A stretch of 64,000 nt of DNA from Diplonema japonicum (GCA_964019335.1 OZ025753.1:124001-188000); one strand, 5' to 3'. Shown: positions 3,508 to 60,025, counted from the stretch's first letter. Notes: a model not told the origin generated them from the letters alone. Program-made: numbers and translations.

Positions 3508-6186
3508 ATGAATAGTCTTCTGGACATGTTGCTGCTGGCAGCCCTCCTCGCAAGCAGTGCTGCGGCACCACTCAGTCGCATTGGAGGCATCGATGCCCTT
3601 GGTGATGTCAACGACGTGCAAACGATAGGGAACATCGCTTACGTTGCAGGCGGGGCCACGGGTCTCATGATATTCGATGTCAGTGATGCGTCGTCGCCGA
3701 AGCTGCTGGGCAGCAGTGCTGATTGCATTGGGTGCAACACGACAGCTCAGTACGTGACTGTGGTGGGCACAAGAGCTTACGTGGTTCCTCATTACGGTGG
3801 TTACTTTCCCCCAAGTACCCATCACACAGTGTTCGCGATTGTTGATGTGAGCACACCTTCGTCACCGAGGCAGCTGGGGACTTACGAAACGGATGAGCCC
3901 TACCACCTTCATGTTTTCATTTCGGGGAATAATTATGTGTATTCACGTCAGAATGATGGGATCCATGTGGTGGATGTGAGCACACCGTCGTCGCCCAGCT
4001 TGGTGACAAAGCTTGACAGTGAGCACAAGTGGGATACTTACAGCGTTTCTGGGACGACCCTCTTCGCGTATTTGCAAGCAGAACCTTCTGGAGCCCCAGA
4101 CATCTTGCAGCTCTACGACGTAACAACCCCGAACCTTCCTCAGACCTTTGGCGAGCTCACTGTGCAGGAAAACATCACCCACTCTAATCCCACGCTCAGT
4201 GTTTTTGAGTCTCATCTCTATGTGGCTTCTGGTACGTTGGTCACCATCATCGACATCTCTTCACGTTTGTCCCCACAGCAGATGGGTACCTTGACCCTCA
4301 CATCGATATTTTCATCTCTCACCGTGTCGGGGAACACAGCTTATGTTGGGACTTACAACAATAACGGGCCTGGTCTTGTTGTTGTTGACATCAGCGACCC
4401 GTCCATACCGGTACCAGTGGGAAGCAGCACTTTCACTTCTGTATCAACTCTCTCTGTGTCTGGGACGAAGGTCGTTGCTGGGGTTCTTCGTAGTCTGGTG
4501 GTCTTCGATGTGAGCGATCCCTCTTCACCTCAACCTGTGGGTGACTACAGCACGAGGGATTACATGATAAATCTTGAGCTTCTTGGTTCGATGGCTGTTG
4601 TCACTACTACACAACAAGATCTAAGCAACTTGACCATGCAAACCTACGATGTTCGTGATGTGTCTTCCCCGCAAGAGTTGGGCAGTCTTCTGGTCAGTGA
4701 CTATCGAGTTGGCAACTTCCTTGCTCTGTCAGGAACGACAGTGTACTTGCCATTCCAAGAAACCTCTACAGCTCTTGGTATTCAAGCTGTCAGTGTGAGC
4801 GACCCATCTAAGCCCACTGTCTTGGGGGCGTACGAGGTGAATGGCCCGAGTTATGCACACATTGCGGTTGATGGAACAACAGTTTATGCCACTAGCTATA
4901 AGGGTATGGATATCATCGATGCAAGCGTTCCATTATCACCTTCCTTGTTGGGCACCTTTCAGTACAATGGCCAAAATCTATATGGTGTAGCTGTCAACAG
5001 TGGCTTTGCTTACATTATCACCACCACCACCAGCACTACCCTTTGCATTGTCGATGTGCGCGATCCGCAGTCACCCACTCTGTTCACCACCTTAGAGGAC
5101 CTGCCCTGTGTGATTGCAGTCAATTACGTAAGAAGTAGTTCCATAGCCATACATGGAACCACTGTCTACTATTCGTGTGAAGGAACCTTTGGCATCATCG
5201 ACATCAAAGATGCATCGTCGCCTTCACCTCAGCTGCTTGGGGAGTACACAGCACAGGTCTTTGACTTCGCTGTGGACGGGAACACGGTCTATCTTGCCTC
5301 TTATGCTCAGCTTCTCGTTCTCGATGTGAGCACACCGTCGTCTCCACAGCTTGTGGGCAGCCACTTCATCCCCACCGCATTTCAAGGCATCTTTTTCTTC
5401 CCTAACTTCTATCTTGGTATTGCTGTTTCAGATGAGAGGGTTTACGTAGCCAGCTACGGGCTTTATGTTTTTGAAAAGCCCACTTCAACAGCGGCGCCCA
5501 CTCCGACAGTGGCACCCACAGCACCACCCACATCGGTACCCTCAATGGCACCACCCTCAAGATCACCACCCACAACGGTACCTCCAACAGCACAACCCAC
5601 ATCAGGACCCTCAACACCAGTACCGGACGGAACACCAGCACCCAGTGAGAACAGCAATGACACATGGAAGATTGTGGCTATTGTAGCGATTGCAGCACTT
5701 TCCCTTGTCATCGTGATTGCCATCGGTGTTGCTTGTGTATGTAAAGACGAAAAGAAGAATAAATAAGAAATAAGAAGAAAGGAGAAGCAGACCCTCCAAA
5801 GCGCAGTCCGGCTCCACCAATCTAAGAACCACACTTAGCAGTGTGTAGCTTGGAGGACTGGACGATGGGTGTGGTACCGTCGTGTCGCGTCTGTACCTTA
5901 AAAGAAAAACAACTGGAATTTGCCGATACCGCAGTATGCTGCTGCAACAAGGGGGTGGGTAACACCTTCATGTGAAGCGTGCAACTTAAATGCTCACCAA
6001 GGTCATTTTTTGGCAAGTTGCTGCCAAACTTCTTATATCGGGATTCTGAGTCTGAAAAATAAATACCCCACACCACAGTATTGCAAAGCGAAGAAGAAGA
6101 AGGTGCCGTTCACTGGTAGAGATGAAGCTCTGGTAGATTTCAAGAACACGAACGACGACGAAAACGACTTCGGTGTTGCTGCTTAG
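3508..6186 (+). CDS. LVIVD-repeat beta-propeller type-I membrane protein, copy 1; join(3508..5736,6079..6186)
   Basis: Signal peptide, ~14-15 AYV...L.I.DVSxPSSP repeats, Pro/Thr/Ser stalk and TM helix. Phase-0 intron GTATGT(5737)...CACAG(6078). Exon 2 = YCKAKKKKVPFTGRDEALVDFKNTNDDENDFGVAA*. Confidence 0.85.
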
Positions 6187-6807
6187 GGGTGCTGTAGTTT
6201 GTCTGGGAAGGTTCCAAAAAAGAAACAAGAATAGAACTTTAAGCTTTTTTTCATTACCCCCTATTCAAAAAAAAAAAAAAAATGATTACTATATGCAAAT
6301 TGGGCCGAGCAAAAGACCTTGGAAGCCTTTTAAGATTTTTTTTTTTGTTTGTGCGAACAACTAAGACGACTTCGTCAAAAGAATTCTTTTTTTTTTTCTT
6401 ATTGCTAATAGCAAGCCTTGTGTGCCGTTACATCAAATGAAAGAAGAACAGAAAGAAGAAAAGAAAGGTCGGCAAACGCGTGCAAAATCTTGTGGGCTGC
6501 CCTAAGAGACAAGTGCCTGGGAATTCAGGCACATCATCATCACCTCAAAGCACTTCCAACTTATCTCGAGAAGGGGTTACGGATGTGGAATCATACTTTA
6601 ATGGGGGGCAAGAAACCCCTCCCTCAACACAAGTCGCATCTGAACGAACTCCAGGAGCTCCCGCGCTAGAAGCCGCTTTGTAACCTTGCTTTTTTTCTCG
6701 TTTTCTTTTTTTTTTCTCTCGTGTGGGTATTTATTTATTCAAACGAGAAAAAAAAAAAAAAAAAGAACCTTATCGAATTCTTTCTCCTTTTTCTTTTTTT
6801 CTTCTTG

Positions 6808-6840
<33 letters not shown>

Positions 6841-7500: not shown

Positions 7501-7514
7501 TACACGAAAAGAGA

Positions 7515-8360
7515 ATGGTGCGAGCCACGAAGTTAGACGGGGCGAAGCAGACGATTATAGTTGCTTACGATTCCCAGCGCTACGACGCTGTACTCGCGCC
7601 GCTACACATGATGGATTGGTTGGGCAAGACGGAGGCCACGGTAGTGCAGATTGAGGACCTGCTGAAGGTGGCACTTGGTACTCGGAACAAGAAGGCTACA
7701 GCACCTGGCCAGACTTCGACTCTACAACAACGGGGAAATCTACCCGGCCCTGAACGAAGGGGTGTCCTGACCACTGGGACGGGGGCGAGTCAGGGGCGCC
7801 ATACCCCCTATGAGAAGGCTGGTAACCGCACACTTAAAGTCCTAAGTAGTGAGGGTGAACAAACAGGCAGTACCAAGAAGCCACCGACACAGGTTTTCCA
7901 TCTCGCAAAGAGACTGCACTTACGGCAGCAGGACAGAAAGAGGTGGCACACGCAATGAAATCCGCGACAGAGAAGAACAAGAAGCGAAAATACAGACCTA
8001 TGTGGGCAGACCCGCAACAGGGAAGGATCAAGGAAGGTCTGATATCTATAGATATCGCAAGACGAGGAGGCCTGGCGACTTTTGTACGCGAGCCACGAAC
8101 AGCTCTGGGAACATCACTCGAGAGGGATGACGCTAAGCAAGACATCAACAGTAGGTGGCAACACACAAGGGTCAGCATAGACGGGGAAAATTTGTGGCTG
8201 CACATCATCACCGTGTACTGCCCAGCAGGGGAGGGAGAGGAACCAAGGAGGCAACGAGAACGACTCTTGCAGCACGTCCTCAGGAAGAAGGCGATGGAGC
8301 TCGGGAACGTCCCCGTGATTGTGGCAGGCGACCTCAACACGGACGAGAAAAGATCGTATG
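7515..8360 (+). mobile_element. LINE fragment with APE endonuclease N-terminal half, related to the element at 47145
   Basis: PMWADPQ...RGGLATFVREPRTAL...WLHIITVYCPAG...IVAGDLNTDE matches the translation of 49195-49545. Confidence 0.85.
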
Positions 8361-8367
8361 AGCTTCT

Positions 8368-8650
8368 GGGCTTTATGTTTTTGAAAAGCCTACTTCAACA
8401 GCGGCACCCACTCCGACAGTGGCACCCACAGCACCACCCACATCGGTACCCTCAACAGCACCACCTACATCAGCACCCTCAACAACACCACCCACATCAG
8501 GACCCTCAACACCAGTACCGGACGGAACACCAGCACCAGTGAGAACAGCAATGACACATGGAAGATTGTGGCTATTGTAGCGATTGTGACGGCACTTTCC
8601 CTTGTCATCGTGATTGCCATCGGTGTTGCTTGTGTATGTGAAGACGAAGT
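8368..8650 (+). pseudogene. 3' fragment (stalk + TM + intron donor) of an LVIVD gene, joined to a LINE fragment
   Basis: Matches 5458-5750 with deletions; donor GTATGT at 8634. Confidence 0.85.
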
Positions 8651-8920: not shown

Positions 8921-9062
8921 CTGAAATGATTTTAAGTTAGAATAGAGAAGCGGAGAAATAGATAAAAAGGGGTGGAAAAGAATAAATACTGCATACGAAA
9001 ACAGAGAGTCGAATATAAAGGGAAAAAGGTGACTGAAATGATTTTAAGTTAGAATAGAGAAG
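8921..9062 (-). repeat. Two copies (8921-8968, 9033-9062) of the CTTCTCTATTCTAACTTAAAATCATTTCAG micro-element
   Basis: Same motif on the + strand at 11643, 28646/30454, 38689 and 52768. Confidence 0.8.
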
Positions 9063-9959: not shown

Positions 9960-10675
9960 AGGGAGAACGGATAGGCCCACCTAGAACGGATAGGCCCACC
10001 TGCAGAAGCTGCAGAGGTATTAATCGTCCTCAAGTGGGATTTGCCTAAAGATTTGCCGGTCGAGACCCTCCTAAGAGTGGCAAGGCTCTGGCCGGTGAGT
10101 AACATTATAGACTGCGAAACCCAAACCTACTACGAACGCTTCCAACGAATGGAGGGAACCAGCGGGCACAGGGCGGCGCAGGGGAAGGGAAAAAACGAGA
10201 GGTCATGGCTACACAAAGCTAGACAGAAAGAGAGCACCCTGAAGATGGAAGAGAACGAGCGTTCACCACTACACAGAAAGGCGGCGATCCCACCGTGGGA
10301 GTGGGAAATCTTGAAAGATCTAACGATACGGACGGAAGGGAGCGGAGTGAAAAAACTCGAGCAGGCAGAACAGAAGAAAGCTGCCCTGCAGACAATCGCC
10401 AAACTACCCAAGGCCGACTACACGGTGTACACCGACGGATCAGTAGCAGACGGCACGGGGGGCGCAGGCATCCTGATTGAACACGCGGGTGGCACCGTTG
10501 AACTGAGCAGGGGTGTGTGCGAAAGTCTTTGCGACAGCTACCAGGCAGAGATGACGGCGATAGGCACCGCACTAGCACACATGGTCCAGAAGGAAGCACA
10601 AGGGAAGCAGATAAACCTCCTGACGGACTCGATGGCATGCCTGCAGAAATTGAAGCAGGGACCAGCAGGGCGATC
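9960..10675 (+). mobile_element. Ingi/I-like LINE fragment with RNase H domain
   Basis: YTDGS...DSYQAEMTAI...LLTDSMACL carries the RNase HI catalytic motifs; paralogues at 22990 and 38000. Confidence 0.85.
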
Positions 10676-11237
10676 CCGGCGTAACCCCTTTGTTAATCGT
10701 GTCGATGCTTAGGGGGCTTGGATTCACCGCAACCGCGCTTTGAATTGGGCAGCAGGTCGGACCGCGAAGCGACCCAGGTGTTGGCAACACCTCCCAAAGC
10801 GAGCTGGGGATGCATGCGCACTCTAGCTTACGGGCGAAAGATAAATGCCCCCCTCCCCGGTCGTGAGGCCTATGGGTGTGGCACGCCATGCGTGAAACGT
10901 TTAGCTCCCTTGAAGCTCACACCAGTGTGCGAGTTTAGCCCATTTTTTGGCACGTTGGCGATGGCTGTGGTGGTCGTTGCAAGAGCGCCTATAGGTAGTA
11001 TTGGACGATTCAGTTAACAGAATAGTTTTTTTTTTTTTCTTGCTTTCCATTTTATGGAGGTGGGCCGTTGCTGACCACTTCATTCCTATCATATAATGAA
11101 TTTTTTCTTTCTCTCTAGTTTCGAATGCTTCCCCTTTCTTTTCTTGAAAAATGGCCATCTGCAGCAGCTATGTTAAAATATCACAGGTTTACGAATAAAA
11201 AAAGAGGGTAAAAAAAAAGTAACCAAAAGACTGCAAA

Positions 11238-14004
11238 ATGACTTCAACATGTCTTCACATGTTGCTGCTGGCAGCCCTCCTCGCAAGCAGTGCTGCGGCA
11301 CCACTCAGTCGCATTGGAGGCATCGATGCCCTCGGTGATGTCAACGACGTGCAAACGATAGGGAACATCGCTTACGTTGCAGGCGGGGCCACGGGTCTCA
11401 TGATATTCGATGTCAGTGATGCGTCGTCGCCGAAGCTGCTGGGCAGCAGTGCTGATTGCATTGGGTGCAACACGACAGCTCAGTACGTGACTGTGGTGGG
11501 CACAACGGCTTACGTGGTTCCTCATTACGGTGGTTACTTTTCCCCAAGTACCCATCACACAGTGTTCGCGATTGTTGATGTGAGCACACCTTCGTCACCG
11601 AGGCAGCTGGGGACTTACGAATCGGATGAGCCCTACCACCTTATAAATCATTTCAGCTACCACCTTCATGTTTTCATTTCGGGGAATAATTATGTGTATT
11701 CACGTCAGCATGATGGGATCCATGTGGTGGATGTGAGCACACCGTCGTCGCCCAGCTTGGTGACAAAGCTTGACAGTGAGCACAAGTGGGATACTTACTG
11801 CGTTGCTGGGACGACCCTCTTCGCGTATTTGCAAGCAGAACCTTCTGGAGCCCCAGACATCTTGCAGCTCTACGAGGTGACAACCCCGAACCTTCCTCAG
11901 ACCTTTGGCGAGCTCACTGTGCAGGAAAACATCACCCACTCTAATCCCACGCTCAGTGTTTTTGAGTCTCATCTCTATGTGGCTTCTGGTACTTTGGTCA
12001 CCATCATCGACATCTCTTCACGTTTGTCCCCACAGCAGATGGGTACCTTGACCCTCACATCGATATTTTCATCTATCTCCGTGTCGGGGAACACAGCTTA
12101 TGTTGGGACTTACAACAATAACGGGCCTGGTCTTGTTGTTGTTGACATCAGCGACCCGTCCATACCGGTACCAGTGGGAAGCAGCACTTTCACTTCTGTA
12201 TCAACCCTCTCTGTGTCTGGGACGAAGGTCGTTGCTGGGGTTCTTCGTAGTCTGGTGGTCTTCGATGTGAGCAATCCCTCTTCACCTCAACCTGTGGGTG
12301 GCTACCGCACGAGAGATTACATGGTGGGTGTTGAGCTTTTTGGTTCGATGGCTGTTGTCACTACCACACCACAAGATCTAAGCAACTTTACCATGCAAAC
12401 CTACGATGTTCGTGATGTTTCTTCCCCGCAAGAGTTGGGCAGTCTTCTGGTCAGTGACTATCGAATCGGCAACTTCCTTGCTCTGTCAGGAACGACAGTG
12501 TACTTGCCATTCCAAGAAACCTCTACAGCTCTTGGTATTCAAGCTGTCAGTGTGAGCGACCCATCTAAGCCCACTGTCTTGGGGGCGTACGAGGTGAATG
12601 GCCCGAGTTATGCACACATTGCGGTTGATGGAACAACAGTTTATGCCACTAGCTATAAGGGTATGGATATCATCGATGCAAGCGTTCCATCATCACCTTC
12701 CTTGTTGGGCACCTTTCAGTACAATGGCGAAAATCTATATGGTGTAACTGTCAACAATGGCTTTGCTTACATTATCACCACCACTGGACCCAACACTACC
12801 CTTTGCATTGTCGATGTGCACGATCCGCAGTCACCCACTCTGTTCACCACCTCAGAGGACCTGCCCTGTGAGCATGCAGTTTACGTGGACAGTAGTGCCA
12901 CTTCCATAGCCATACATAGAACCACTGTCTACTATTCGTGTGAAGGAACCTTTGGCATCATCGACATCAAAGATGCATCGTCGCCTTCACCTCAGCTGCT
13001 TGGGGAGTACACAGCAGAGATCTATGACTTCGCTGTGGACGGGAACACGGTCTATCTTGCCTCTTATGCTCAGCTTCTCGTTCTCGATGTGAGCACACCG
13101 TCGTCTCCACAGCTTGTGGGCAGCCACTTCATCCCCACCGCATTTCAAGGCATCCGTTTCTTCCCTGACTTCTATCTTGGTATTGCTGTTTCAGATGAGA
13201 GGGTTTACGTAGCCAGCTACGGGCTTTATGTTTTTGAAAAGCCCACTTCAACAGCGGCGCCCACTCCGACAGTGGCACCCACAGCACCACCCACATCGGT
13301 ACCCTCAATGGCACCACCCTCAAGATCACCACCCACAACGGTACCTCCAACAGCACAACCCACATCATCGCCCTCAACAGCACAACCCACATCAGGACCC
13401 TCAACACCAGTACCGGACGGAACACCAGCACCCTGTGAGAACAGCAATGACACATGGAAGATTGTGGCTATTGTAGCGATTGCAGCACTTTCCCTTGTCA
13501 TCGTGATTGCCATCGGTGTTGCTTGTGTATGTGAAGACGAAAAGAAGAATAAATAAGAAATAAGAAGAAAGGAGAAGTGGTTCTGAGCCTCCTTTGGCTT
13601 ATTTCTATTTAAGGGAAGCAGACCCTCCAAAGCGCAGTCCAGCTCCACCAATCTAAGAACCACACTTAGCAGTGTAGCTTGGAGGACTGGACGATGGGTG
13701 TGGTACCGTCATGTCGCGTCTGTACCTTAAAAGAAAAACAACTGGAATTTGCCGATACCGCAGTATGCTGCTGCAACAAGGGGGTGGGTAACACCTTCAT
13801 GTGAAGCGTGCAACTTAAATGCTCACCAAGGTCATTTTTTGGCAAGTTGCTGCCAAACTTCTTATATCGAGATTCTGAGTCTGAAAAATAAATACCCCAC
13901 ACCAGTATTGCAAAGCGAAGAAGAAGAAGGTGCCGTTCACTGGTAGAGATGAAGCTCTGGTAGATTTCAAGAACACGAACGACGACGAAAACGACGCTGC
14001 TTAG
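11238..14004 (+). CDS. LVIVD-repeat membrane protein, copy 2; join(11238..13526,13906..14004)
   Basis: As copy 1. Donor GTATGT at 13527, acceptor CCAG at 13905. Exon 2 has an in-frame 9-nt deletion. Confidence 0.85.
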
Positions 14005-15541: not shown

Positions 15542-16546
15542 ATGTCTGTGGCTCTACACGTGCACCTTCCATCTGGGAGCGCTCTTGACATTGCCATGGA
15601 GGGCCATGAGCTGGTGGAACGGCTTAAGGAAAAGGTAGCGTCCGTAGCTGGGTTGAAAACAGACACGTTTCTTTTGATGTTTGAAGGAGAAGAGTTGCGC
15701 GGGGAGCAACATGTTTGGGAGCAGCCGTTCGAGGACCAGAGCGATCTGGAGGTAGTACCGAAGAAGGATACGGAGCTCGAAGCCCACTTCGAAAAACTTG
15801 TGAACCTGAAAGAAGAGCACAGCGGCGACCACCAGGATATTGTCACAACCCTTGCGAAGATCGCATTTCGATGCAAGATGAGAGGCGACACCACCACCGC
15901 TCTGCAATACTGCACAGAGGCCCTGGACATGGCAGGACGCATCGACGGGAATTCGATTTCAACCGCGTCGCTGTTGTCCTTATTGGGTAGCATACAGAAG
16001 GCAGCCAAGGACTACACCACAGCGTTGCAAACACTGCATGCAGCCATGGAGATGCGGAAGAGTATCGATGCAAACATCGGAAGCAGCCACTACAACATAG
16101 GCCATGTCCACAGGCGGCTGGAGGAGTACCCCATGGCACTGCACCACTACAAACAAGCACTCACCATACGCCGTAATTCGAACAGCCGAATGAAGCCTGT
16201 CTATTACACGAGCATAGCGAAGGCGTATCTTGCTATGGGCGATAACAATGCCGCACTGACACACTACCTTTTGGCTTTGGACATTGTGCGTCGGGACCGT
16301 CCATCTGTAGCCTTTAGGATGGTAAGGGTCGCGGACATCTACGAGGCAATGGGCGACACCGACAAGGCTTTGGTGTATCTTGTCAACTCTCTCGAGATGT
16401 TGAGGAGGATAGACTCGGTCGATCACCGCCCTATCATCGCCACCACCTCTGACAGGATAGCCCAGCTGTCCCACGATGCAGGCAATCTTGCGACTGCTGC
16501 AGAGTACCGTAGCATCGCCTCTGAGATGCGGGGCTGTCAGGACTGA
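15542..16546 (+). CDS. Ubiquitin-like domain + TPR-repeat protein
   Basis: N-terminal UBL pattern (LHVHLPSG...LKEKVA...LMFEGEEL) followed by kinesin-light-chain-like TPRs (ALxxYxxALxIRR). Confidence 0.85.
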   Translation: MSVALHVHLPSGSALDIAMEGHELVERLKEKVASVAGLKTDTFLLMFEGEELRGEQHVWEQPFEDQSDLEVVPKKDTELEAHFEKLVNLKEEHSGDHQDIVTTLAKIAFRCKMRGDTTTALQYCTEALDMAGRIDGNSISTASLLSLLGSIQKAAKDYTTALQTLHAAMEMRKSIDANIGSSHYNIGHVHRRLEEYPMALHHYKQALTIRRNSNSRMKPVYYTSIAKAYLAMGDNNAALTHYLLALDIVRRDRPSVAFRMVRVADIYEAMGDTDKALVYLVNSLEMLRRIDSVDHRPIIATTSDRIAQLSHDAGNLATAAEYRSIASEMRGCQD

Positions 16547-21000: not shown

Positions 21001-21566
21001 TTCAAAAAATGCATGGAAACGCGTTTCCATGCCAGCATAGCCCTAGGGGGGGTCATTTGGTCCTTAAAAAGGGCCACTTTTTGCCCTTTTTCAGGCTCTT
21101 CGCCAAGGGCATTTTGGGCCCTTAAAAAAACTGTAACCACCCCAAAAGTGCCCACAAATCACCCAAACCCCCGTTTCCCGATGGTTTCCGGCCCCAGAAG
21201 TGCCCAGAATCATCCTAGGGGGCCCTATTTTATGTTCCCTAGGATTACATAGGGAAAGTACCAAACAGGGGCCCCAAAATTAGAAGATGATTCTGGGCAC
21301 TTCTGGGGCCGGAAACCATCGGGAAACGGGGGTTTGGGTGATTTGTGGGCACTTTTGGGGTGGTTACAGTTTTTTTAAGGGCCCAAAATGCCCTTGGCGA
21401 AGAGCCTGAAAAAGGGCAAAAAACGACCCCCTTATGACCCCCCCTACCCCCCCCGCACACACCACAGTATTGCAAAGCGAAGAAGGCGCTGGGCAGTGGG
21501 GATGAAGCTCTGGTAGATTTCAATAACACGAACGACAACGAAAACGACTACAGTGTTGCTGCTTAG
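18023..21566 (+). CDS. LVIVD-repeat membrane protein, copy 3; join(18023..20212,21468..21566)
   Basis: Start at MTSTCLHM as in copy 2. Donor 20213, acceptor CACAG 21467. Exon 2 = YCKAKKALGSGDEALVDFNNTNDNENDYSVAA*. Confidence 0.8.
20582..20662 (+). repeat. Structured 3' terminus + A-tail of a retroelement; other copies 24426-24505 and 59798-59890, tips at ~39945 and ~45632
   Basis: CACTTCC...GGAAGTG closes two hairpins and is followed by GAATTT(A)n. Confidence 0.7.
20846..21045. mobile_element. hAT-type (Ds-like) MITE in the intron of copy 3
   Basis: 16-bp TIR TAGGGCTATGCTGGCA / TGCCAGCATAGCCCTA with CCGTTT/AAACGG subterminal repeats. Related pieces at 17147-17210 and 25553-25570. Confidence 0.8.
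21046..21445. mobile_element. Foldback / long-TIR MITE
   Basis: ~135-bp apparently perfect inverted repeat (~21078-21213 vs ~21286-21422); ends GGGGGGTCAT / ATGACCCCCC. Confidence 0.75.
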
Positions 21567-33268: not shown

Positions 33269-33307
33269 AGGGACGCCAGCCATGAAGACATCCGGAGGGA
33301 CATCTTC

Positions 33308-44000: not shown

Positions 44001-45601
44001 GTGAGCGATCCCTCTTCACCTCAACCTGTGGGTGGCTACAGCACGAGGGATTACATGGTGGGTGTTGAGCTATTTGGTTCGGTGGCTGTTGTTACTGCTA
44101 CACCAGAATATCTAAGCAACTTGACCATGCAAACCTACGATGTTCGTGATGCGTCTTCCCCGCAAGAGCTGGGCAGCCTTCTGGTCAATGACTATCGAGT
44201 CCCCGCCGAATTCCTTGCTCTGTCAGGAACGACAGCGTATTTGCCATTCCTGAATGAGGACTTTGGTGGTTTTCAAACCGTCAGTGTGAGCGACCCATCT
44301 AACCCCACTGTCTTGGGGGCGTACAAAGTGAACCCGATGTTTGCGTATCGATCCATTGCGCTTCATGGCACAACAGTTTATGCCACTAGGCCCGACGGTG
44401 GCATGGATATCATCGATGCAAGCGTTCCATCATCACCTTCCTTGTTGGGCACCTTTCAGTACAATGACACCTATCTACATGGTGTAACTGTCAACAATGG
44501 CTTTGCTTACAGTATCACCACCGGAGGATCCAACACTACCCTTTGCATTGTCGATGTGCACCATCCGCAGTCACCCACTCTGTTCACCACCTTAGAGGAC
44601 CTGCCCTGTGAGGGAAGAGCCACTTCCATAGCCATGCATGGAACCACTGTCTACTATTCGTGTTCAGGACGCTTTGGCATCATCGACATCAAAGATGCAT
44701 CGTGGCCTTCACCTCAGCTGCTTGGGGAGTACACAGCACAGGTCTTTGACTTCGCTGTTGACGGGAACACGGTCTATCTTGCCTCTTATGCTCAGCTTCT
44801 CGTTCTCGATGTGAGCACACCGTCGTCTCCGCGGCTTGTGGACAGCCACTTCATCCCTGCTGTGGTCTATGACGTTGGTATTGCTGTTTCAGGTGGGCGG
44901 GTTTACGTAGCCAGCCACGGGCTTTATGTTTTTGGAAGGTTCACTCCAACAGCACACACATCAGCACCCTCAACATCGACACCCCCAACAACAACAAGCA
45001 CATCAGCACCCTCAACATCGACACCCCCAACAACAACAAGCACATCAGCACCCTCAACAACACCACCCACATCAGGACCCTCAACACCAGTACCGGACGG
45101 AACACCACCCAGTGAGAACAGCAACGACACATGGAAGATTGTAGCGATTGTGATGGGTGTAGCACTTTCCCTTGTGATTGTCATCGGCGTTGCTTGTGTA
45201 TGTGGAGACAGAAATAAAAAAAGAAATAGAAGACTGAACCTCCTTGGCTTTTTCTTATTTTAGGGGGTTAAATACTGAGCGGAATCATAATGGTTCTGGC
45301 AGAGAGACAGGAGAGACGAGGAAGGGGCTCAGAGAGCTCGTAAAGAAGTATGGATTGAAAGTCCATGCAGTCGGGAAGGGAGGGGATTCCCTCTTTAGTA
45401 CAGTATCGTCGAGACAGCAACCGCAGAACGGTGAGCACACACCCGCACACCGAGATTTATCAAATCTTTTATAAATATTGTTTTATTCCACCACAGTATT
45501 GCAAAGCGAAGAAGACGAAGGTGCCGGTAAGTATGGACCAAGCTCTGGTAGATTTCAAGAACACGAACGACGACGAAAACGACTACAGTGTTGCTGCTTA
45601 G
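40746..45601 (+). CDS. LVIVD-repeat membrane protein, copy 5, with two tandem ectodomains; join(40746..45197,45497..45601)
   Basis: Unit A, (APPTP)n linker, unit B, stalk, TM. Donor 45198, acceptor CACAG 45496. Exon 2 = YCKAKKTKVPVSMDQALVDFKNTNDDENDYSVAA*. Confidence 0.85.
45262..45470 (+). mobile_element. Miniature internally deleted OTU-LINE-like derivative in the intron of copy 5
   Basis: LKVHAVGKGGDSLFSTVS (OTU start-like) is joined to a 3' end matching 37318-37405. Confidence 0.6.
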
Positions 45602-46462: not shown

Positions 46463-49400
46463 ATGACAACATGTCTTCACATGTTGCTGCTGGCAGCCCT
46501 CCTCGCAAGCAGTGCTGCACTCCGTCACATTGGAGGCATCGATGCCCTCGGTGATGTCAACGACGTGCAAACGATAGGGAACATCGCTTACGTTGCAGGC
46601 GGGGCCACGGGTCTCATGATATTCGATGTCAGTGATGCGTCGTCGCCGAAGCTGCTGGGCAGCAGTGCTGATTGCATTGGGTGCAACACGACAGTTTTTT
46701 ACGTGACTGTGGTGGGCACAACGGCTTACGTGGTTCCTGTTAACGATGCTGAACACGTCCACACAGCGTTTGCGGTCTTCGATGTGAGCAATCCCTCTTC
46801 ACCTCAACTCACGGGTGACTATCTCCACCGGTTGCCATCATATCTACGTGTTGGGAACAACAGCCTTCCTTGGGTGCTCGAGCAGCCCGATACTCAGATC
46901 TTTGATGTGAGCAGTCCATCGTCCCCAATGGCGCTGGGAAACTTCAATGGTTTAAGCGAGTCTGGGTACCCTGGTGACATCGTGGCCGTGGGGGACTTTG
47001 TGTACATTACCCCGAGGCTGTACAATGACTATGTAAGCATCATGGTGATCGATGTGACTGACCTGTCGTCACCCGAGCTGTTCGTTAATGTGACGGGCAT
47101 ACCCTGTGCCGACAAGATCGCTGTGCGGGGGAACACTGTTTATTAAAAGGGGCTGGTAATTTGGGTTGGAATTAATCAAATAATCGCAATCAAAGATGGC
47201 TGGGGAACCTCCACGTGGTGGCCCTGGGTCCCCTCCCAAGGGGGGGGAGCAAACTCCCCAGAAGGAGGCAGCATCATCAACATGGGTGCAGGTGGCGCGA
47301 ATGGCGAGGTCAGTGAAGCCGGTGCAAGCGCAGAAGGTGAAGGCGAAGGAATGGCCTTCTCGTCAGGTGCAGGAGGTGCAGGAGAAGTGGATGGACGAGG
47401 ACGACGACAACGACAGCAGCAGCAGCAGCACGATCGTACTGCGAGCCATCTGGTGGAGAGCCGGGAGGACGGGTGGGCGAAGGTGCAAGCGGACGCCAAG
47501 AACGAGACGGTGAAGGCACTCAAGGCGCTGGGAGTCACCCTGCGGGGGATCTCGGAGCCAAGAGGCGAGGCCTGGAAGGGACAGCTGACCAAGCTGGACC
47601 TCCTGGTCTACGTGGCGGCCAACGAAGAAGGGAAGGCGAAGCAGGCTGGTGCGGGGGGCTTGTTCGTAGAGGACCGCAGGAGGAAGCGAGAGAAGCAGCC
47701 ACCACTATGGCTGAGGACGTGGGACGTGGCGGCGGCGCGGGGGATCGGAGGACCTACGGCCACCCTCACAAGCAACGGGAGGGGTCTCGGTTTGGTGCAA
47801 GACGGGAACCTGGACAGCGACGACGCCAGACACAAAGCACAGGAGGCCGGCTTGCTGGTGGGAACAGGGGCTGGACGAAAGTTCGACCTCCACGGTGTGC
47901 CACGCGGGATCACGGGCGAGCAGGTGCAGGGCTTGCTACGGAACAACGGGTGGAAGGACGCGACGGTCATTCGCGTCATCCCGAAGAAGGGGCGGCAACT
48001 GGCGGTGGTCCAGTCGGCAGAGCAACCCCCGTTCGGCGAGATGCAGGTGGGGGAGCACCGGATGGCGCTGACGGCGGCGTGGAAGCAGCAACCACTGCAA
48101 ATGGTGGTGGCGAAAGGGGAAACGAGGAAGGACCCCAACGAAAACTGCGACACACGATACTCCAAGCCCGAGTTCCTCTGTTTTTACGGCAAGAACAAGG
48201 GCGAGGAGTACTGGGCGGCCGCCGACCCCGAGAAGCTGCAGGAACGGGAGCAGAAGGACGCGACCGCGGACACGACCACAGAACAGAAGAAGAAGAAGAC
48301 AAAGAAGCCGCAGAAGCAAGAACAACGACAACAACAACAACAGAAGGACACCACGATCAACGCAACAGAGCTAGAGCAATACAAAATGCTCGTCACGAAG
48401 TTGCAGAGCGAAGTCGACCGCCTCAAAGATGCGCTAAGGAGGGTGGCACGCAGGGCGATGGAGAACAGGGCCGCGACGACCCCAGCAGCCACGACAAGCG
48501 CTGCATCCCCGAAGCGGCAGAGGAGCGGCACTCCGGAACAGAACACGGAGACGCCGACGGCGAAGAAGAAGCCTGCGACGGCGGCGGCGGCAGGTGCAGT
48601 GTCCCCGAAAAAGACAAACACGAACACGAACACGAACAAGGCAGCGTCACCGAAGCGACAGAGGAGCCAGACTCCCTCACCCTCTCCGTCGCCGAAGAAG
48701 CCCGACCCCAGCAGCCCCGGTCACAGGAAGCCAACAACCTCGTCGGAAGGGAAGCTGCAAGGCAAGGAGAAGAAGAAGCAGAAGGTGCATGTGCATGCCT
48801 GGTCTGCGACCTACCAGGCCTCACAGGGTCAATGCGGGTCATGTCATGTCCAGCTGAAAGGCAGGAGGGCGAGGGTGTGCGCCATGGAGAACTGCAGGCG
48901 GGAACAATGCGTGAGCTGCATTGGAAACCTCCCCAACTGAAAACGGGGAGGCGGAAACCGGGGTCAGAGGAGGAAGAGGACTTCGCGAGGCTCACGGCGC
49001 AGGGGATACATCCGAACCCTGGGCCCAACATGTACGTGTCGACAGTGAACGTGGCCTCCCTACGCAACCAAATAGAGGAGGTTACGACGAAGCTGGACGT
49101 CGACGTGATCTGCACGCAGGAGACGGCGCTGACCTTAGCTGGGCAGCAGGAGATGGAGCGGGAGCTCGGGAAGAAGACGAAGAAGAAGTGGAAGCCGATG
49201 TGGGGACCGCCGCAGCCGGGAAGGAAGGTGGAGGGAATCGCTTCGAACTGGGTAGCTCAGAGGGGAGGACTGGCAACCCTAATCCGAGAACCCAGGACAG
49301 CATTGCCAGGTTCTCTGGACACCAACGACCAATCTGAAGAACAACGCAGGAGGTGGCTGCACACTCAGGTCGCAATCGATGGCAAACGCAGATGGCTACA

Positions 49401-52400
49401 TATCATATCGATATACTGCCCGGCAGGAACAGGACGTGAAGAGACGGCAAAGAGGGAGACCCTCCTCCACTACATCCTGCGGAAGAAGGCGAAAGAGCTC
49501 GGCAATGTGCCAATACTCGTCGTTGGCGACTTCAACACCGACGAGGCAAGATCCCCGGAACTGCGGAAGGCACTGCAGGCAGGATGGGCGGACACAGCGG
49601 ACCTATGCGCAAGATGGAGAGGGAAACAACCTGATCCAACGTTTGTACGGGAGAACTGCGCCACGCGGATCGACAGGATACTGGCAAGTCCGGCCATCAC
49701 CGGATGCCAAGTGAACCAAGCGATCAAGGGGACGGATCAACCGGACACTGACGGTTGCGCTTGAGCTCGACAGATTCAGGATGACGGTACAACGATACAT
49801 GCTGCCGAGGGGTCTGGAGACGGCAGATGAGCCAACGGAAGAACAAGGAGCCGAAGCAGTGGAAGCAGCCGGATTCCGACAGTACCTGCACGAAGGAAAT
49901 ATAACAAAAGCCTTCGAGACCCTCTCCCGGTGCACCGAAGACCTCCTCATAGACCAACCAGTGGGGACGCCGGGGAGGGCAGCGTACGTCGGAAGAGGCA
50001 AACACACCAGCACAAAGGAGAAGGAAGTGTGTGCACCAACAACGACGGGAACGGTGGGTGCAGCTACAACGTGGCAAGCGCGACTGGAAAAGCTGAAGCT
50101 CAAGACGCGGACACTGCAACAACAGCTCGAGCAGGCAGTTGAGGACAAGGGGCTAAGCAAGCCGACCCTGAACACGATAAGAAACATGAACAGGGAAGCA
50201 ATGGCTCTGGCAGTACCATCTGAACCGGTGCCGCACGACGCTGTTCTCATAGAGGACATGCTGGCAGCAGCGCTGAACATGGAAGACGCAATTGCAGCTG
50301 AGGAACGGAAGAAAAGGACCGAGGCGAACACGTCACGGAGACGAGAATACCTGGCCGAGGTTGCAGCAGGACGCGAGACAACAAGACTGGTAAAAGTCGC
50401 GAGAGGCAAACGTCAAAGCGACGGAACCAGGGCGGTCAAGGAAGGGATGGTGCTCTTTGCGTCCCCCGGACTGATCGACAGCGTCATGCGCAAGGCGTGG
50501 AAGACCGTCTTTGCGAAATACGAGTCCCGACCGGAGCCCCTCTATGCCCCCTTCAAGGCAAAGTACAGCAAGTTCGTGCAACGGCATGAGATGGAGAGGA
50601 CACAACTGACGGGAGCAAGGCTGAGGGAAGTGCTCAGAAAGAAAAGCAAGAAAAGCGCGGCAGGCATCGACGGGTGGAGGATGCTAGAGCTACGGAAACT
50701 ACCAGAGTCAGTACTAGACGCCTGGGCGATGCTCTTCCATGCGATCGAAGCAACGGGGAGGTGGCCGGAAGCCATGAAAACGGCACTGGTTACCCTCGTA
50801 CCGAAGTGCGACGATGCGGGACCACTGGAGCACAGGCCTATCACAGTCACATCTGCGGTGTACAGACTCTGGGCATGCGCGCGACTGTCTGATATCCTCA
50901 TCTGGCAGGAGAAATGGATACACGACAAGCAATACGGATTCCGCACTGGTTTCGGGACAGAGGACGCACTTTTGGACCTCGCCCTTGACATCGAAGAATC
51001 CATTCTGGAGGGGAAACCGCTAGTCGGGGTGGCACTCGACTTTGCGAAATGCTTTGACAGTGTACCGCAACAGCTGGTTCTGGAGCTGGTGGAGGACATG
51101 GGCATGGACACAGGCATCCTCAGGGCACTGAAAGGAATGTACGCAGGCATGCGAAGACGGTTCAGGTACGCAGCAGGCGTGGGGGAGGAGTTCCACACAA
51201 CCAACGGAATCCTTCAGGGATGCCCGATTTCAGTGGTACTCATCAACGCGCTGTTGGCGGTACTAATGAAGCAGGTGGAGAACGACACAGGGGTCCGCTC
51301 GCTGTCTTACGCGGACGATGCATACCTCTTGGCACGGCTCGGTGCGGCGTTGCAGGAAGGCGTAGACGCAGTGGAAGCCTTCTGCAAACAGGTGGGGATG
51401 AAGCTCAACACCAGGAAGACGAAGACCTTTGCAGTGAACAGGAAGACACCGGAGGTGAAGGTGAAAGGCGAGGAACTGCAGCCGACACGGACTGTAGGAG
51501 TACTGGGAGCCAAGCTGCGGACAGACGGCAGGCCGCAAACCAACGGCGACAGGACGGCGGAGGCACTCGGGACGCTGAGCAGGCTGGGAGCAACGCCGTT
51601 GACCTTTCAGCAGAAGGCGAAGATCATCAGCAGCACGATCCTACCGAGCTGCCTCTACGACTGCCCATTCTCACCGCCGAAAACGGGACAAATGGCCACG
51701 CTGGTGAAGGAGACCACGTACGCGCTCTGGGGGCAGAAGTACTGCACCAGGAACCCAGGCACAGTACTATCCGTGACACTGCCGGGACACACGAGCCACC
51801 CACAGAAGACCAAGCATGACCTAGAGGCGTTGAAAGGACAATGGGCGAGAGAACGAAGAGAAAAAGCGGCCAGGCTGGGGAGAAGGCCGGCAAGACCACC
51901 AAAGGAGGAGAAACCGCTGCTGAAAGGGGATAGGTACAGGTAGAAGATGAGAACAAGGGGGCGTCTCACAAAGACTTCCTTTAACTCATATATTTATTCT
52001 TCATGCATGGAGTACTTTGGAATTGACATCAAGGATGTGGCGTCGCCTTCACCTCAGCGCTTGGCGGGTACAGGCCTCCTCTTATTCTAACATTCTTGAC
52101 TTTGATGTGGCTGGGGACATGGTGTATCTTGCTGTCTCTAATCCTCGGCTTCTCGTTCTCGATGTGAGCGCACCGTCGACGCCACGGGTTGTGGACAGCC
52201 ACTTCATCCCCGCATTCATCTCGTCTTCTTACAGACCAAGTGTCGCAGTTTCAGGTGGGAGGGTGTATGTTGCTTCTTACGGGATTTATATTTACGGGGA
52301 GAAGGCTCTCACTCCCACACCATCGTATGCCCCATCCACTGTGTCGCCTGCCACAGGACAGTCTGGTGGGGGAAGTGACAACACGTGGAAGATTGTGGTT

Positions 52401-52487
52401 GCTGTGATCAGTGTAGTTGCGGTCGTCATCATTGGAGGGGGTGTGGTCAAGGTATGTGTGTGGGGATACCCACCAAGAAAATCATAA
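46463..52487 (+). pseudogene. LVIVD copy 6: chimeric and shorter, split by a LINE (46463-47144 + 51999-52487)
   Basis: GNTVY|SSCMEYFGIDIKD rejoins across the insertion; two frameshifts at ~52058-52072; donor GTATGT at 52452. Confidence 0.85.
47145..51992 (+). mobile_element. APE-RT non-LTR retrotransposon (2A-LINE), internally deleted near the 3' end
   Basis: Candidate TSD TTTATT (47139-44 / 51993-98). ORF1 ~47196-48940 ends in a Cys/His finger, then GIHPNPGP, APE (CTQE, GDFN, RIDR) and RT (QYGF, LDFAKCFD, QGCP, YADD). Frameshift ~49700-49780. Confidence 0.9.
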
Positions 52488-54606: not shown

Positions 54607-55566
54607 ATGAACATGACCACGCGGATAAGAACACCGTCAAACGAACTGCACGAGGTGGTGGTGACCGACAGGGACACGATCACGAATCTTTACCGAAAGG
54701 CAGCGGAAGCGGCTGGGGTGCATCACGACTCCTTTACCCTACACCACGAAAACGAGGACCTTCATCGCAACGCAGCAACAGATGTCTCCAAAATCGGGCT
54801 GACCCACGACAGCGAAATCTCAATGCTGCCGAAATCAGGCGGCACCGTCCACGTTACAGCCAGGGAACTGAAGAACAACAGCGAACTGTGGGCAGCTAGA
54901 CTACAAACTGACCCAGAGCTCACCATCGTCATTGACGTCTCAAGCACAGGACTGGCATCCTTCACACAGAATTCCATCCCGGAAAACGTACGCCATCTGA
55001 AAATAGAAGACTCATCGTCACTGGTTAGATTTGTTGGGAACGACTTCCTCGCGTCATGCTATAGTCTTGTGACTGTCGATCTGACTGGTCTCAAGGGGGT
55101 GGCGTTCATCGGGGGGAATTTTCTATCCGGTTGTACTTCTTTGCGGAAGGTACTGCTTCCCCCTTGTGTGGGTCTTGTGGAGGTGAAACCTTGTTTTCTC
55201 TCGTACTGCGAGTCCTTGGAGAGTGTTGATTTGAGTAGTTTAGGCAATGTTACTGTTCTCGGGCACGGGTTTCTCGCTTATTGCCGCTCGCTGACCGCCC
55301 TCGACATTTCCCCTTTGCAACGCGTCGTGTCGATCGGGGACTGTTCGCTTATGCACTGTTCGTCTCTTGTCTCCGTCGACCTTTCGCAGCTCCGTTGTGT
55401 TGCTTCCATCGGCGATTATTTCTTGAAGGGTTCCTCGCTCACGCACGCCAACCTCCGTACGCTGCAAAAGCGCAACACGACAGTTGGCCGTGGCTTCCTT
55501 GACGGTACCAGCGTTCCCACAGTGCAACGGAGGCTGCGGGAGCCCTGCGGGTGTTTATTAATGTAG
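54607..55566 (+). CDS. Ubiquitin-like domain + leucine-rich-repeat (BspA-like) protein
   Basis: UBL N-terminus and repeats of IGxxFLxxCxSLxxVDLSxL. Confidence 0.85.
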   Translation: MNMTTRIRTPSNELHEVVVTDRDTITNLYRKAAEAAGVHHDSFTLHHENEDLHRNAATDVSKIGLTHDSEISMLPKSGGTVHVTARELKNNSELWAARLQTDPELTIVIDVSSTGLASFTQNSIPENVRHLKIEDSSSLVRFVGNDFLASCYSLVTVDLTGLKGVAFIGGNFLSGCTSLRKVLLPPCVGLVEVKPCFLSYCESLESVDLSSLGNVTVLGHGFLAYCRSLTALDISPLQRVVSIGDCSLMHCSSLVSVDLSQLRCVASIGDYFLKGSSLTHANLRTLQKRNTTVGRGFLDGTSVPTVQRRLREPCGCLLM

Positions 55567-57076: not shown

Positions 57077-57108
<32 letters not shown>

Positions 57109-57218: not shown

Positions 57219-57944
57219 ATGAGCATCACAGTGTTTGTGAGGACGCAAGCTGGGGTTCACGATGTGGAAGTGGCTGGGACGGAGACAGTAGGGAGCCTGT
57301 ACAAGAAAGCGGCGAGTGCAGCAGATCTACTGGAAGGGATGTTCAAACTAATTTGGGAGGGGGAGGTTCTGGACAGGTTCGGGGATGAAGAGATCCAGAG
57401 GAGCGGTCTCGTGGAGGGAACTGAGGTTCAGGTGAAGGCGAGCCCGAAGGTAAGCTTCGCGGAGATTTGTGAGAATCCCGAATTGAAGCAAGAGCTCGGG
57501 CATCTTGTGGCGGCTGACCCCGATCTGGTTCTAGAGATCGATGTAGGGGACTTGCCAAAGGGAAAGCTAGACCTCAAGAAGCGACACCTCCCTTCCAAGC
57601 TGCAGGGCCTCATCATCACGGACACGTATGGCCGCGTGAGCGAGCTGGAAACTGGTTTTCTTTACGAGAGCCATGACTTGACATCCCTCGTTTTCCGTGG
57701 CTTCACGAGCGTGAGAACCATTGGCAACTACTTCCTGTGCTCTTGCTGCGGGTTGAGGACCCTGGAGTTTGGTGGCTTTACCAACGTAACTTCCATTGGT
57801 ATTTACTTCATGTATTCGTGTTGGTCTTTAGAAAACCTCGACTTGAGCGTCTTCGCCAATGTCACCACTGTCGGCAAGCACCCTTTGGAAGCCTGCCAGT
57901 TGGAAGATGTAGAAATTCCATGGGCTACAAAGAGGGCCCACTGA
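57219..57944 (+). CDS. Ubiquitin-like domain + leucine-rich-repeat protein
   Basis: MSITVFVRT...ETVGSLY...LIWEGEVL, then IGNYFLCSCCGLRTL-type repeats. Confidence 0.85.
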   Translation: MSITVFVRTQAGVHDVEVAGTETVGSLYKKAASAADLLEGMFKLIWEGEVLDRFGDEEIQRSGLVEGTEVQVKASPKVSFAEICENPELKQELGHLVAADPDLVLEIDVGDLPKGKLDLKKRHLPSKLQGLIITDTYGRVSELETGFLYESHDLTSLVFRGFTSVRTIGNYFLCSCCGLRTLEFGGFTNVTSIGIYFMYSCWSLENLDLSVFANVTTVGKHPLEACQLEDVEIPWATKRAH

Positions 57945-58133
57945 GTAAGCCGACTTGGGGGGGAGGGAAAAAAAGAATAGTGTTTCAAAAAAAGAAAAGT
58001 GTCTCTTCATTTTCTTTTTTTTTTTTTTTGTTAAAGACCATTTGCCCTTAAGTACCGCTTGTTCTTTTTTTTCCCGTATCTTTGTTATAAATAATGCTCA
58101 CAGCCACAGGTTGGAAAAGAAGAATACGAATAA

Positions 58134-60025
58134 ATGAACGGTCTTCGGGACATGTTGCTGCTGGCAGCCCTCCTCGCAAGCAGTGCTGCGGCACCACTCA
58201 GTCGCATTGGAGGCATCGATGCCCTCGGTGATGTCAACGACGTGCAAACGATAGGGAACATCGCTTACGTTGCAGGCGGGGCCACGGGTCTCATGATATT
58301 CGATGTCAGTGATGCGTCGTCGCCGAAGCTGCTGGGCAGCAGTGCTGATTGCATTGGGTGCAACACGACAGCTCAGTACGTGACTGTGGTGGGCACAACG
58401 GCTTACGTGGTTCCTTTTTACAATTTCAATCCCTCTCGCTTTGGCCACACAGTATTCGCGATTGTTGATGTGAGCACACCTTCGTCACCGAGGCAGCTGG
58501 GGACTTACGAAAAGGAATGGCCTTTCCGCATTTTCATTTCAGAGAATAATTATGTGTATTCCTTTCAGCACGATGGGATCCATGTGGTGGATGTGAGCAC
58601 ACCGTCGTCGCCCAGCTTGGTGACAAAGCTTGACAGTGAGGACAAGTGGGGTGCTTACTGCGTTGCTGGGACGACCCTCTTCGCGTATTCGACATTTTCT
58701 GCATCACCAGACGTCCTGCAGCTCTACGACGTGACAACCCCGTACCTTCCTCAGACCTTGGGCAAGCTGACTTTGCAGGGAGCAATCCCTATTATCTCTT
58801 TCTCAGTGTTTTTGGGTCTCATCTCTATGTAGCTGGTAATATTTTCGTCACCATCATCGACTTTCTTCACGTTTGTCCCCAAAGCAGATGGGTACCTTGA
58901 CCCTCACATCGAGATTTTTAGCTCTCACCGTGTCGGGGAACACAGCTTATGTTGGGACTGACAACGATGGCGGGACTGGTCTTGTTGTTGTTGACATCAG
59001 CAGCTTCGTTTAATGTGTCCCCTGTGTCGTAGAATGTGGAAGCTGCAGCGCAGAATGCAGCAACAGTGAGAGTAACTGTCTTGGGGGCGTACAAGGTGAA
59101 TAGCACGAATTATGCACACATTGCGGTTGATGGAACAACAGTTTATGCCACTGGGCCCGACGGTGGCATGGATATCATCGATGCAAGCGTTCCATCATCA
59201 CCTTCCTTGTTGGGCACCTTTCAGTACAATGGCCCCTATCTACATGGTGTAACTGTCAACAATGGCTTTGCTTACATTATCACCACCACCACCAGACCCA
59301 ACACTACCCTTTGCATCGTCAGTGTGCACGATCCGCAGTCACCCACTCTGTTCACCACCTTGGACCTGCCCTGTGTGGGAAGAGCCACTTCCATAGCCAT
59401 GCATGGAACCACTGTCTACTATTCGTGTTTTTAGGAAGCTTTGGCATCATCGACATCAAAGATGCATCGTGGCCTTCACCTCAGCTGCTTGGGGAGTACA
59501 CAGCAGTGGTCTTTGACTTCGCTGTTGACGGGAACACGGTCTATCTTGCCTCTTATGCTCAGCTTCTCGTTCTCGATGTGAGCACACCGTCGTCTCCACA
59601 GCTTGTGGACAGCCACTTCATCCCCGGCGAACTTAAAAACATCAATTAAAAAAAAAAAAAAAAAAGAAAAAAAAAGAATCCCGAGGACTGGCAACCAAAG
59701 GAGAAAAAAAAAAAAAAAAGCCATTAGCCAACTGTGGAAAGAGAATACCCATGTCACAAAGGTGCTAGAACAATAACACAGGCCGACACGAAAGCACGAA
59801 CGTCTCAACACACTTCCGTTGGCTCCACACAGCCCAGCTGGGTGGGGTCGGTCTGGCTAGACCAAGAGGAGGTGGAATTTAAAAAAAAAAGAAATAACCA
59901 CAATAGCTTTCTTGGTATCGCTGCTTCTGGTGGGAGGGTTTATGTCGCAAACTACGGGCTTTATGTTTTTGAAGAAATGTCCACTCCAACAGCGGCACCC
60001 AGTCCGACACACCAGCACCCTCAAC
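58134..60025 (+). pseudogene. LVIVD copy 7, disrupted
   Basis: Several frameshifts; internal deletion patched by foreign sequence (~59001-59073); retro-insertion ~59627-59895; no TM segment. Confidence 0.85.

Follow-up and report, generated by a model that had tools for sequence, protein, structure and literature searches.

How can the copies of a gene family remain almost identical, even at silent positions, over most of their length and yet differ completely, in sequence as well as in length, within a limited number of sharply bounded slots? This question is raised by a stretch of 64,000 nucleotides (nt) from Diplonema japonicum (GCA_964019335.1, OZ025753.1:124001-188000), hereafter the window, which carries a tandem array of genes encoding beta-propeller ectodomains built from LVIVD repeats. 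A preliminary description, made from the sequence alone, had interpreted this array as an antibody-like repertoire of receptors in which hypervariable loops, comparable to the complementarity-determining regions (CDRs) of immunoglobulins, are displayed on a frozen scaffold. According to our analysis the array is likely to be a germline family of LVIVD double-propeller membrane proteins which is homogenised by gene conversion, carries cassette-like variable loops on its top face and probably serves as a set of adhesion or recognition receptors.

Diplonemids are among the most abundant and diverse heterotrophic protists of the sea, and to our knowledge almost nothing is known about their cell-surface molecules. 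A full-text literature search found no papers on LVIVD proteins in diplonemids.

A tandem array of two-exon genes

All positions are window coordinates unless they carry a prefix, the window corresponding to C106:124001-188000 on its contig, and genome-wide searches cover the 62.5-Mb assembly of 132 contigs. Every long frame of the family in the window lies on the + strand. The preliminary description had counted eight ectodomains in seven genes; the shared framework and the variable slots were confirmed, the eight ectodomains are however not equivalent, since six are intact and distributed over five genes (E1 to E5) and two belong to degenerate copies (E6 and E7). The members of the array are as follows.

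3508-5736, + strand: E1 exon 1, encoding a signal peptide, a 14-blade LVIVD double propeller, a Pro/Thr/Ser stalk and a transmembrane (TM) helix (PF08309, 144 bits; AlphaFold2 model); open frame of 743 codons, followed by a GTATGT donor
5737-6078, + strand: E1 intron, 342 nt, GT...AG, phase 0; the transcript-derived protein P0183 joins ...IGVAC to YCKAKK...
6079-6186, + strand: E1 exon 2, conserved acidic cytoplasmic tail of 35 residues plus stop (100% tblastn match to the tail of P0183/P0184)
11238-13526, + strand: E2 exon 1; intron 13527-13905, exon 2 13906-14004 (frame, alignment and splice sites)
18023-20212, + strand: E3 exon 1; intron 20213-21467, exon 2 21468-21566 (alignment and splice sites); the true start at 18023 lies inside an open reading frame (ORF) beginning at 17849
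25776-28169, + strand: E4 exon 1; intron 28170-30591, exon 2 30592-30690 (alignment and splice sites); a mosaic of F1-like and E-like segments (F1 is introduced below)
40746-45197, + strand: E5 exon 1; intron 45198-45496, exon 2 45497-45601; two complete ectodomains in a single frame, the second (E5b) from 43065
46463-47146, + strand: E6, N-terminal fragment; about 110 family-like residues, then divergent sequence, then a stop
52017-52487: divergent C-terminal LVIVD remnant, separated from E6 by a long interspersed nuclear element (LINE) at 47282-51943
58134-60192, + strand: E7, a broken copy, frameshifted and partly deleted, in which the last loop is interrupted

The single-exon gene models assumed at first did not hold, as each gene has a phase-0 intron after the TM helix and a second exon of 32-35 codons. 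In transcript-derived proteins the TM helix, ending in ...IGVAC, continues into a tail which the genomic open frame lacks, and an exon coding for this tail lies 234-2393 nt downstream of the stop of each frame. All five genes share a GTATGT donor immediately 3' of the Cys codon, a CAG acceptor and the same phase, with introns of 299-2422 nt. The tail itself (32-35 residues) is first basic, then strongly acidic, ends in AA and is conserved between the copies. When exon 2 was searched alone, nine occurrences were found in the genome, all of them on contig C106. The conserved cytoplasmic tail of the corrected models is a testable candidate for sorting or signalling.

The exon-1 frames are open over 730-1484 codons, and every indel within them is in frame. 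Upstream of the start codon, a conserved 5' untranslated region (UTR; 3430-3507, + strand) follows a pyrimidine tract and CACAG, and homology between the copies begins at this point. By their sequence, tract and CACAG probably constitute a spliced-leader acceptor. None of the five exon-1 ORF proteins, taken with their 3' read-through codons, had an exact match in the sequence collection.

The two full double-propeller ectodomains of E5 are joined by a P/T-rich linker (junction as assembled). This looks like the result of an unequal crossover within the stalk repeats, by which TM helix, intron, tail exon, spacer and signal peptide were deleted. Two upstream paralogues, F1 and F2 (L003:1532-4504, equal to C106:48532-51504, and L002:3109-5442), have identical ectodomains. 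Their difference lies in the stalk and amounts to about 200 residues of (A/S)PPT-type repeats, and stalk length is therefore a fast-changing property.

Family membership and predicted fold

The proteins match the LVIVD repeat (PF08309) with 144-291 bits against a cut-off of 20.2, with 5-10 individually significant repeats per protein, and 13 DxSxPxxP turns can be recognised in the family alignment. The closest outside proteins are 24-33% identical and bacterial wherever their source is named; one long eukaryotic transcript among the relatives has a different C-terminal architecture. A sequence search of the PDB yielded no match.

For structure prediction, the exon-1 open frame plus nine read-through residues was submitted to AlphaFold2 with an alignment of 62 sequences. 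The model (mean predicted local distance difference test, pLDDT, 82.5; predicted template-modelling score 0.78) contains 56 strands in strict four-strand periodicity, i.e. 14 blades of four strands, followed by a disordered stalk and a single C-terminal helix. Foldseek returned tandem 7+7 WD propellers such as Utp21 as best matches, with expectation values (E) of about 1e-17 across more than 700 columns, whereas ESM Atlas scores of 0.75-0.76 were uninformative. The ectodomain is accordingly modelled as a 7+7 double beta-propeller, in agreement with the double propeller on a mucin-like stalk that had been proposed before. The stalk, rich in Pro, Thr, Ser and Ala and variable in length, is presumably O-glycosylated. 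A signal-peptide-like N-terminus, the stalk and one predicted TM helix make a location at the cell surface likely.

Genome-wide, at least 45 LVIVD frames were found on at least 20 contigs. Those of the subfamilies on contig C62 likewise encode type-I proteins, with different tails, patchy identity and differences centred on the loops. A repeat otherwise known from surface proteins of bacteria and archaea is thus represented in this organism by a large family of type-I membrane proteins.

The variable slots and their place on the propeller

In an alignment of the six intact window ectodomains with F1 and F2, long invariant runs are broken by about 20 indel-rich slots. The borders of these slots are sharp to the codon, the flanking codons being identical in all copies with their third positions included. 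Every slot peptide quoted in the preliminary description was recovered at its gene by six-frame pattern search and alignment. Three slots may serve as examples.

3790-3822, + strand: slot after AYVVP, in the blade 2 B-C loop (E1 residues 95-105); found 14 times on the contig, with 11 distinct alleles
5104-5139, + strand: slot after LPC, in the D-A loop preceding blade 12 (E1 residues 533-544)
5368-5415, + strand: slot after HFIP, in the D-A loop preceding blade 14 (E1 residues 621-636)

If the strands of each repeat are numbered s1 (VxVxG), s2 (AYV), s3 (LxIxD) and s4 (xLGxY), the four kinds of loop behave as follows.

s2-s3 loops: length-variable in 9/14, mean entropy 1.03 bits
s4-s1 loops: length-variable in 7/14, mean entropy 1.00 bits
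s1-s2 loops: length-variable in 1/14, mean entropy 0.32 bits
s3-s4 loops: length-variable in 0/13, mean entropy 0.23 bits

In an up-and-down sheet the s2-s3 and s4-s1 loops share one face and the remaining two kinds lie opposite; B-C and D-A loops are by convention assigned to the top. Pooled by face, 16 of the 28 s2-s3 and s4-s1 loops vary in length, as opposed to one of the 27 loops of the other face (Fisher p = 1.8e-5). The N-terminal strand (RIGGI) is of the s4 type and completes blade 14, so that s1 to s4 correspond to A to D and the variable loops to B-C and D-A. The predicted placement of the slots on one face, with the DVSxPSSP turn kept constant, therefore agrees with the earlier proposal (entropy 1.0 against about 0.25 bits), to which can be added that the s1-s2 hairpin is constant as well. 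Dips in pLDDT coincide with the slots.

The composition of the slots is far from that expected from their nucleotides. Tyr (2.4x), Asp (1.85x) and Asn (1.6x) are enriched, as had been noticed before, and so is Gly (2.3x); Cys (0.09x), Leu (0.47x) and Arg (0.44x) are depleted.

Among the long top-face loops, only SADCIGCNTT, in the D-A position before blade 2 (3718-3744, E1 residues 70-79, and equivalents), never varies; it contains an N-glycosylation sequon and two cysteines, both conserved. The LPC slot, too, has conserved cysteines on its flanks, and blades 1 and 13 are essentially invariant.

Gene conversion and the constant framework

Similarity between the copies sets in some 80 nt 5' of the ATG and is lost at about the stop, as seen in self-BLAST and in the alignment of the upstream regions. 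Apart from the recent E1/E2 and E5/E6 flanks, the spacers are unrelated to each other and filled with degraded retroelements and unrelated genes. Such coding-only homology might also arise by retroposition of processed mRNA; this possibility was rejected, since the introns are kept and neither leader nor poly(A) remnants were seen.

For the comparison of divergence, 516 codon columns were assigned to the framework and 181 columns to 20 slots. Among the window copies the proportion of synonymous differences (pS) in the framework is 0.016-0.086 and that of nonsynonymous differences (pN) 0.019-0.067, so that the near-identity of the framework even at synonymous sites, first noticed from the sequence alone, can be considered established. 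In the slots, pS is 0.29-0.50 and pN 0.38-0.50 in all pairs except the youngest.

The 59 biallelic informative sites of the framework divide the seven sequences in 25 different ways, and 851 of the 1711 pairs of informative sites (50%) fail the four-gamete test. Along the gene the nearest neighbour of E3, E4 and E5b switches repeatedly, slot alleles travelling together with their flanks; E4, for instance, is F1-like around four separate slot groups. Many of the differences between E1 and E2 are likewise states that recur in other copies. Four-gamete failures and neighbour switching together point to rampant conversion of short tracts, by which loop cassettes are moved between copies. A neighbour test of the pairwise homoplasy index (PHI) type gave p = 0.14 and speaks neither for nor against recombination, as adjacent informative sites are already incompatible in about 50% of cases. 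We explain the frozen scaffold by concerted evolution in which short tracts are converted, a process restricted to coding sequence and 5' UTR.

Loop divergence and the test for selection

Is the variability of the loops driven by selection on the protein? As codeml is unreliable under so much recombination, the comparison of its models M7 and M8 was replaced by pairwise Nei-Gojobori counts of nonsynonymous (dN) and synonymous (dS) divergence by structural layer, with a bootstrap over codons.

Bottom layer: dS 0.066, dN 0.059, dN/dS 0.90 (0.60-1.36)
Middle layer: dS 0.075, dN 0.089, dN/dS 1.18
Top layer (variable face): dS 0.23, dN 0.25, dN/dS 1.08 (95% interval 0.90-1.32)

Judged by these layer-wise counts, replacements in the putative binding loops do not detectably exceed silent changes. 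In top loops of fixed length, where the alignment is secure, dS is 0.166 and dN 0.169, a ratio of 1.02, and the length-variable loops give 0.77. Synonymous divergence is 3.5-fold greater on the variable face, and as silent change rises together with replacement (0.23 against 0.066), the hypervariability is a property of the DNA rather than of the amino acids. The idea of a CDR-like diversified recognition system is not supported by these figures. A loop dN/dS at or below one with ordinary indel rates, or a lack of expression, had been named as observations that would speak against this idea; the former is borne out in part, the ratio being close to one, and alleles of the copies are transcribed (see below).

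Selection could nevertheless have acted. It is conceivable, if doubtful, that positive diversifying selection acts on the loops of the top face and that these make up an adaptive repertoire for recognition or antigenic variation, to which conversion only supplies the scaffold. The restriction of hypervariability to one face, a composition resembling that of binding sites (Tyr, Gly, Asp, Asn), indels that are all in frame and the shuffling of cassettes between copies would be in line with such selection, and raised synonymous diversity is expected in linkage to maintained diversity. On the other hand, dN/dS is not detectably above one either on the variable face or in its loops of fixed length, merely about ten germline variants exist, and several paralogues are transcribed together in bulk culture.

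The pattern of dN/dS fits old loop alleles which conversion fails, or is selected not, to erase, and equally drift of unconstrained loops or a raised local mutation rate. Neutral decay, in which loops without constraint escape conversion once they are too different to pair and the whole family is dispensable and drifting, would account for a ratio of about one everywhere, for slot synonymous divergence as high as the nonsynonymous one and for the abundance of broken copies and retroelements. We regard it as quite unlikely. Five long frames have stayed intact despite dozens of indel events, the loops have a strongly non-random composition and are almost free of Cys, splice sites and cytoplasmic tail are conserved, and spliced transcripts exist. 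In particular, in-frame indels, open frames of the length given above and loop composition argue against pure drift.

The youngest pair, E1 and E2, bears on the question of local mutation. Their downstream spacers differ by 8 mismatches in 1055 aligned columns, whereas their top loops show 5 silent and 16 replacement codon differences and 4 indel events, about 0.7 silent differences being expected. Several of the states are found in no other copy. This hints at raised mutation in the loops, although few differences are involved and the assembly may lack some donors. A local mutagenic process in the loop DNA, such as error-prone repair associated with indels, insertion of retroelements or patching from pseudogene templates, possibly also in somatic cells, seems very improbable as the general explanation. 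The E1/E2 differences would be accounted for, as would an insert in an E2 loop that carries a target-site duplication together with the 3' terminus of a dispersed element (see below) and the presence of the same slot allele in a fragment and an intact gene, but donors absent from the haploid assembly could explain the unique states, just one insert derived from a transposable element (TE) was identified, and the contigs of four sequencing runs show no heterogeneity beyond cross-matching.

Retroelements and new loop sequence

The insert in E2 has the following structure.

11634-11666, + strand: D-A loop of blade 3 of E2, extended by 8 codons; a 15-nt insert between the two units of a 9-nt direct duplication (11634-11642 and 11658-11666)

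Over its last 12-13 nt the insert is identical to the 3' terminus of a dispersed element. Genome-wide there are 85 copies of the 12-mer as compared with 3 of a control, and 160 copies (up to 2 mismatches) as compared with none of a 21-mer from the element end which terminates in this 12-mer. The full 15-nt insert itself has no second copy in the genome; repetition is confined to its 3' 12-mer and the longer element end. The element ends in ...TCTAACTTAAAATCATTTCAG and lacks poly(A); its approximately 160 genomic copies include those in the window at 8921 (-), 9033 (-), 30453 (+) and 52807 (+). At 38672-38727, a 23-nt copy of the same end lies between 16-nt direct duplications, which points to an element that inserts as very short, 5'-truncated copies with target-site duplications. 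At least one loop, in blade 3 of E2, was thus lengthened in frame by a heavily truncated copy of a dispersed element, a concrete case of a retroelement fragment exapted as loop sequence.

Transcripts and support for the assembly

Trinity isoforms from EukProt contain, in their N-terminal part, the loop alleles of E2, F1/F2 and a copy at contig position 116 kb and, in the C-terminal part that is spliced to the tail, those of E1, F1/F2 and E5b. Transcript P0121 contains the extended-loop allele of E2. At least five paralogues contribute alleles to these bulk-culture transcripts and are expressed together. Neither bulk transcripts nor run contigs gave any sign of somatic diversification or exclusive expression, although rare somatic events could escape such data.

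Contigs of four public runs from three studies match the stretch, mostly at 99% or more. They reveal no heterogeneity beyond cross-matching between paralogues, from which their loose ends and joints also result. A collapse or artefact of the assembly was considered and rejected, because slot alleles recur exactly in independent transcript assemblies and the run contigs match.

A probable course of evolution

The following account is the likely one. A same-strand tandem array of two-exon paralogues encodes type-I LVIVD membrane proteins, in which frequent conversion of short tracts, limited to the 5' UTR and coding sequence, keeps the strands and the turns of the bottom face nearly identical. 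The B-C and D-A loops tolerate indels and substitutions, silent and replacement alike, and pass between copies as cassettes along with short flanks, while fresh loop material comes from small in-frame indels and at least one micro-insertion of a retroelement. The outcome is an inherited set of about ten variants of a putative binding face on a constant scaffold. It most likely serves to attach the cell to variable external ligands, for example prey, bacteria or other cells, or to recognise them.

Several observations weigh against this interpretation. The assignment of the variable loops to one face, the top, follows from strand topology and not from coordinates. A dN/dS of about one even in the framework (0.90 in the bottom layer) is unusual for a constrained fold and also fits relaxed selection. 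The array is embedded in TE-rich DNA together with numerous broken copies. The Trinity isoforms are chimeric between paralogues, as the identical framework predicts, and hence not paralogue-resolved; transcription of the alleles is thereby proven, the reality of any single isoform is not. Finally, the run contigs are Logan assemblies of unknown library type which are split short by repeats.

A more far-reaching suggestion would be that in this free-living protist, which bears endosymbionts, array and fragment pool form a recognition system that is still actively diversifying. Cassette conversion from paralogues and pseudogene pieces, together with mutagenic indels that include micro-insertions of retroelements, would keep producing binding faces, selected for the recognition of prey, bacteria or conspecifics, either in the germline or with clonal variation. 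Although we consider this unlikely, it would, if true, represent a counterpart of variable-receptor systems that uses a prokaryotic type of propeller fold.

Comparison with known systems

LVIVD-repeat proteins of bacteria and archaea have been described as cell-surface proteins with a 42-residue repeat and a predicted beta-propeller structure (Adindla et al. 2004, PMC2447325). The diplonemid proteins share with them the length of the repeat, the DVSxPxxP turn, the propeller and the extracellular setting. They differ in that they belong to a eukaryote and are two-exon type-I proteins with mucin-like stalk and conserved cytoplasmic tail, and in the number of genes, at least 45, with tandem arrays homogenised by conversion. 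We know of no LVIVD protein whose function has been tested.

The closest mechanistic analogue, by analogy and not by membership, is the HNWD family (het-e/d/r) of Podospora anserina, whose WD40 repeats undergo concerted evolution within and between loci and have a variable top interaction face (Chevanne et al. 2010, PMC2873952). In both cases a beta-propeller scaffold is homogenised and the variable positions lie on the top face. The HNWD proteins are however cytoplasmic STAND NTPases with four variable codons per repeat, demonstrated positive selection and shuffling of repeats, whereas in the present family whole loops differ in length, dN/dS is about one and the ectodomains are membrane-anchored. 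Indeed, a domain scan of our proteins detected no NACHT or NB-ARC domain, their layout being that of a type-I membrane protein.

In tandem arrays of trypanosomatids, conversion homogenises duplicates alongside local divergence and incongruent signal (Jackson 2007, PMC1855330). These arrays are, like the present one, euglenozoan, same-strand and conversion-homogenised, but they concern other protein families, and here divergence is organised by propeller face instead of array position. With immunoglobulin CDRs and the variable lymphocyte receptors of lampreys the family shares a constant fold with hypervariable loops, rich in Tyr, Gly, Asp and Asn, on one surface. In contrast to those systems it consists of a handful of germline genes, for which nothing points to somatic assembly, hypermutation or clonal expression, and the likeness is one of shape only.

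The locus shows unusually cleanly how conversion and loop-restricted divergence may build a set of binding faces on a single scaffold. It also serves as a warning that the origin of hypervariable loops on a frozen scaffold need not involve a detectable excess of replacements.

Other features of the window

Two related non-long-terminal-repeat (non-LTR) retrotransposons lie within the array.

30866-37340: non-LTR retrotransposon with an OTU-like protease domain in ORF1 and endonuclease and reverse transcriptase in ORF2 (domains within 30866-36145)
47282-51943, + strand: non-LTR retrotransposon, the LINE downstream of E6 mentioned above, related to the element at 30866

Degraded endonuclease and RNase H fragments are found in the spacers at 7943-8542, 10041-10712 and 22930-23520. 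Unrelated genes are interspersed at 15542-16546, 54607-55566 and 57219-57944. The first encodes a ubiquitin-like domain fused to TPR repeats, the second an N-terminus followed by BspA-type leucine-rich repeats (PF13306), and the third resembles the second by eye. At 62453-63697 a DUF3431 frame (PF11913, E 2e-17), unrelated to the array, is preceded by long A/G-rich and T-rich runs.

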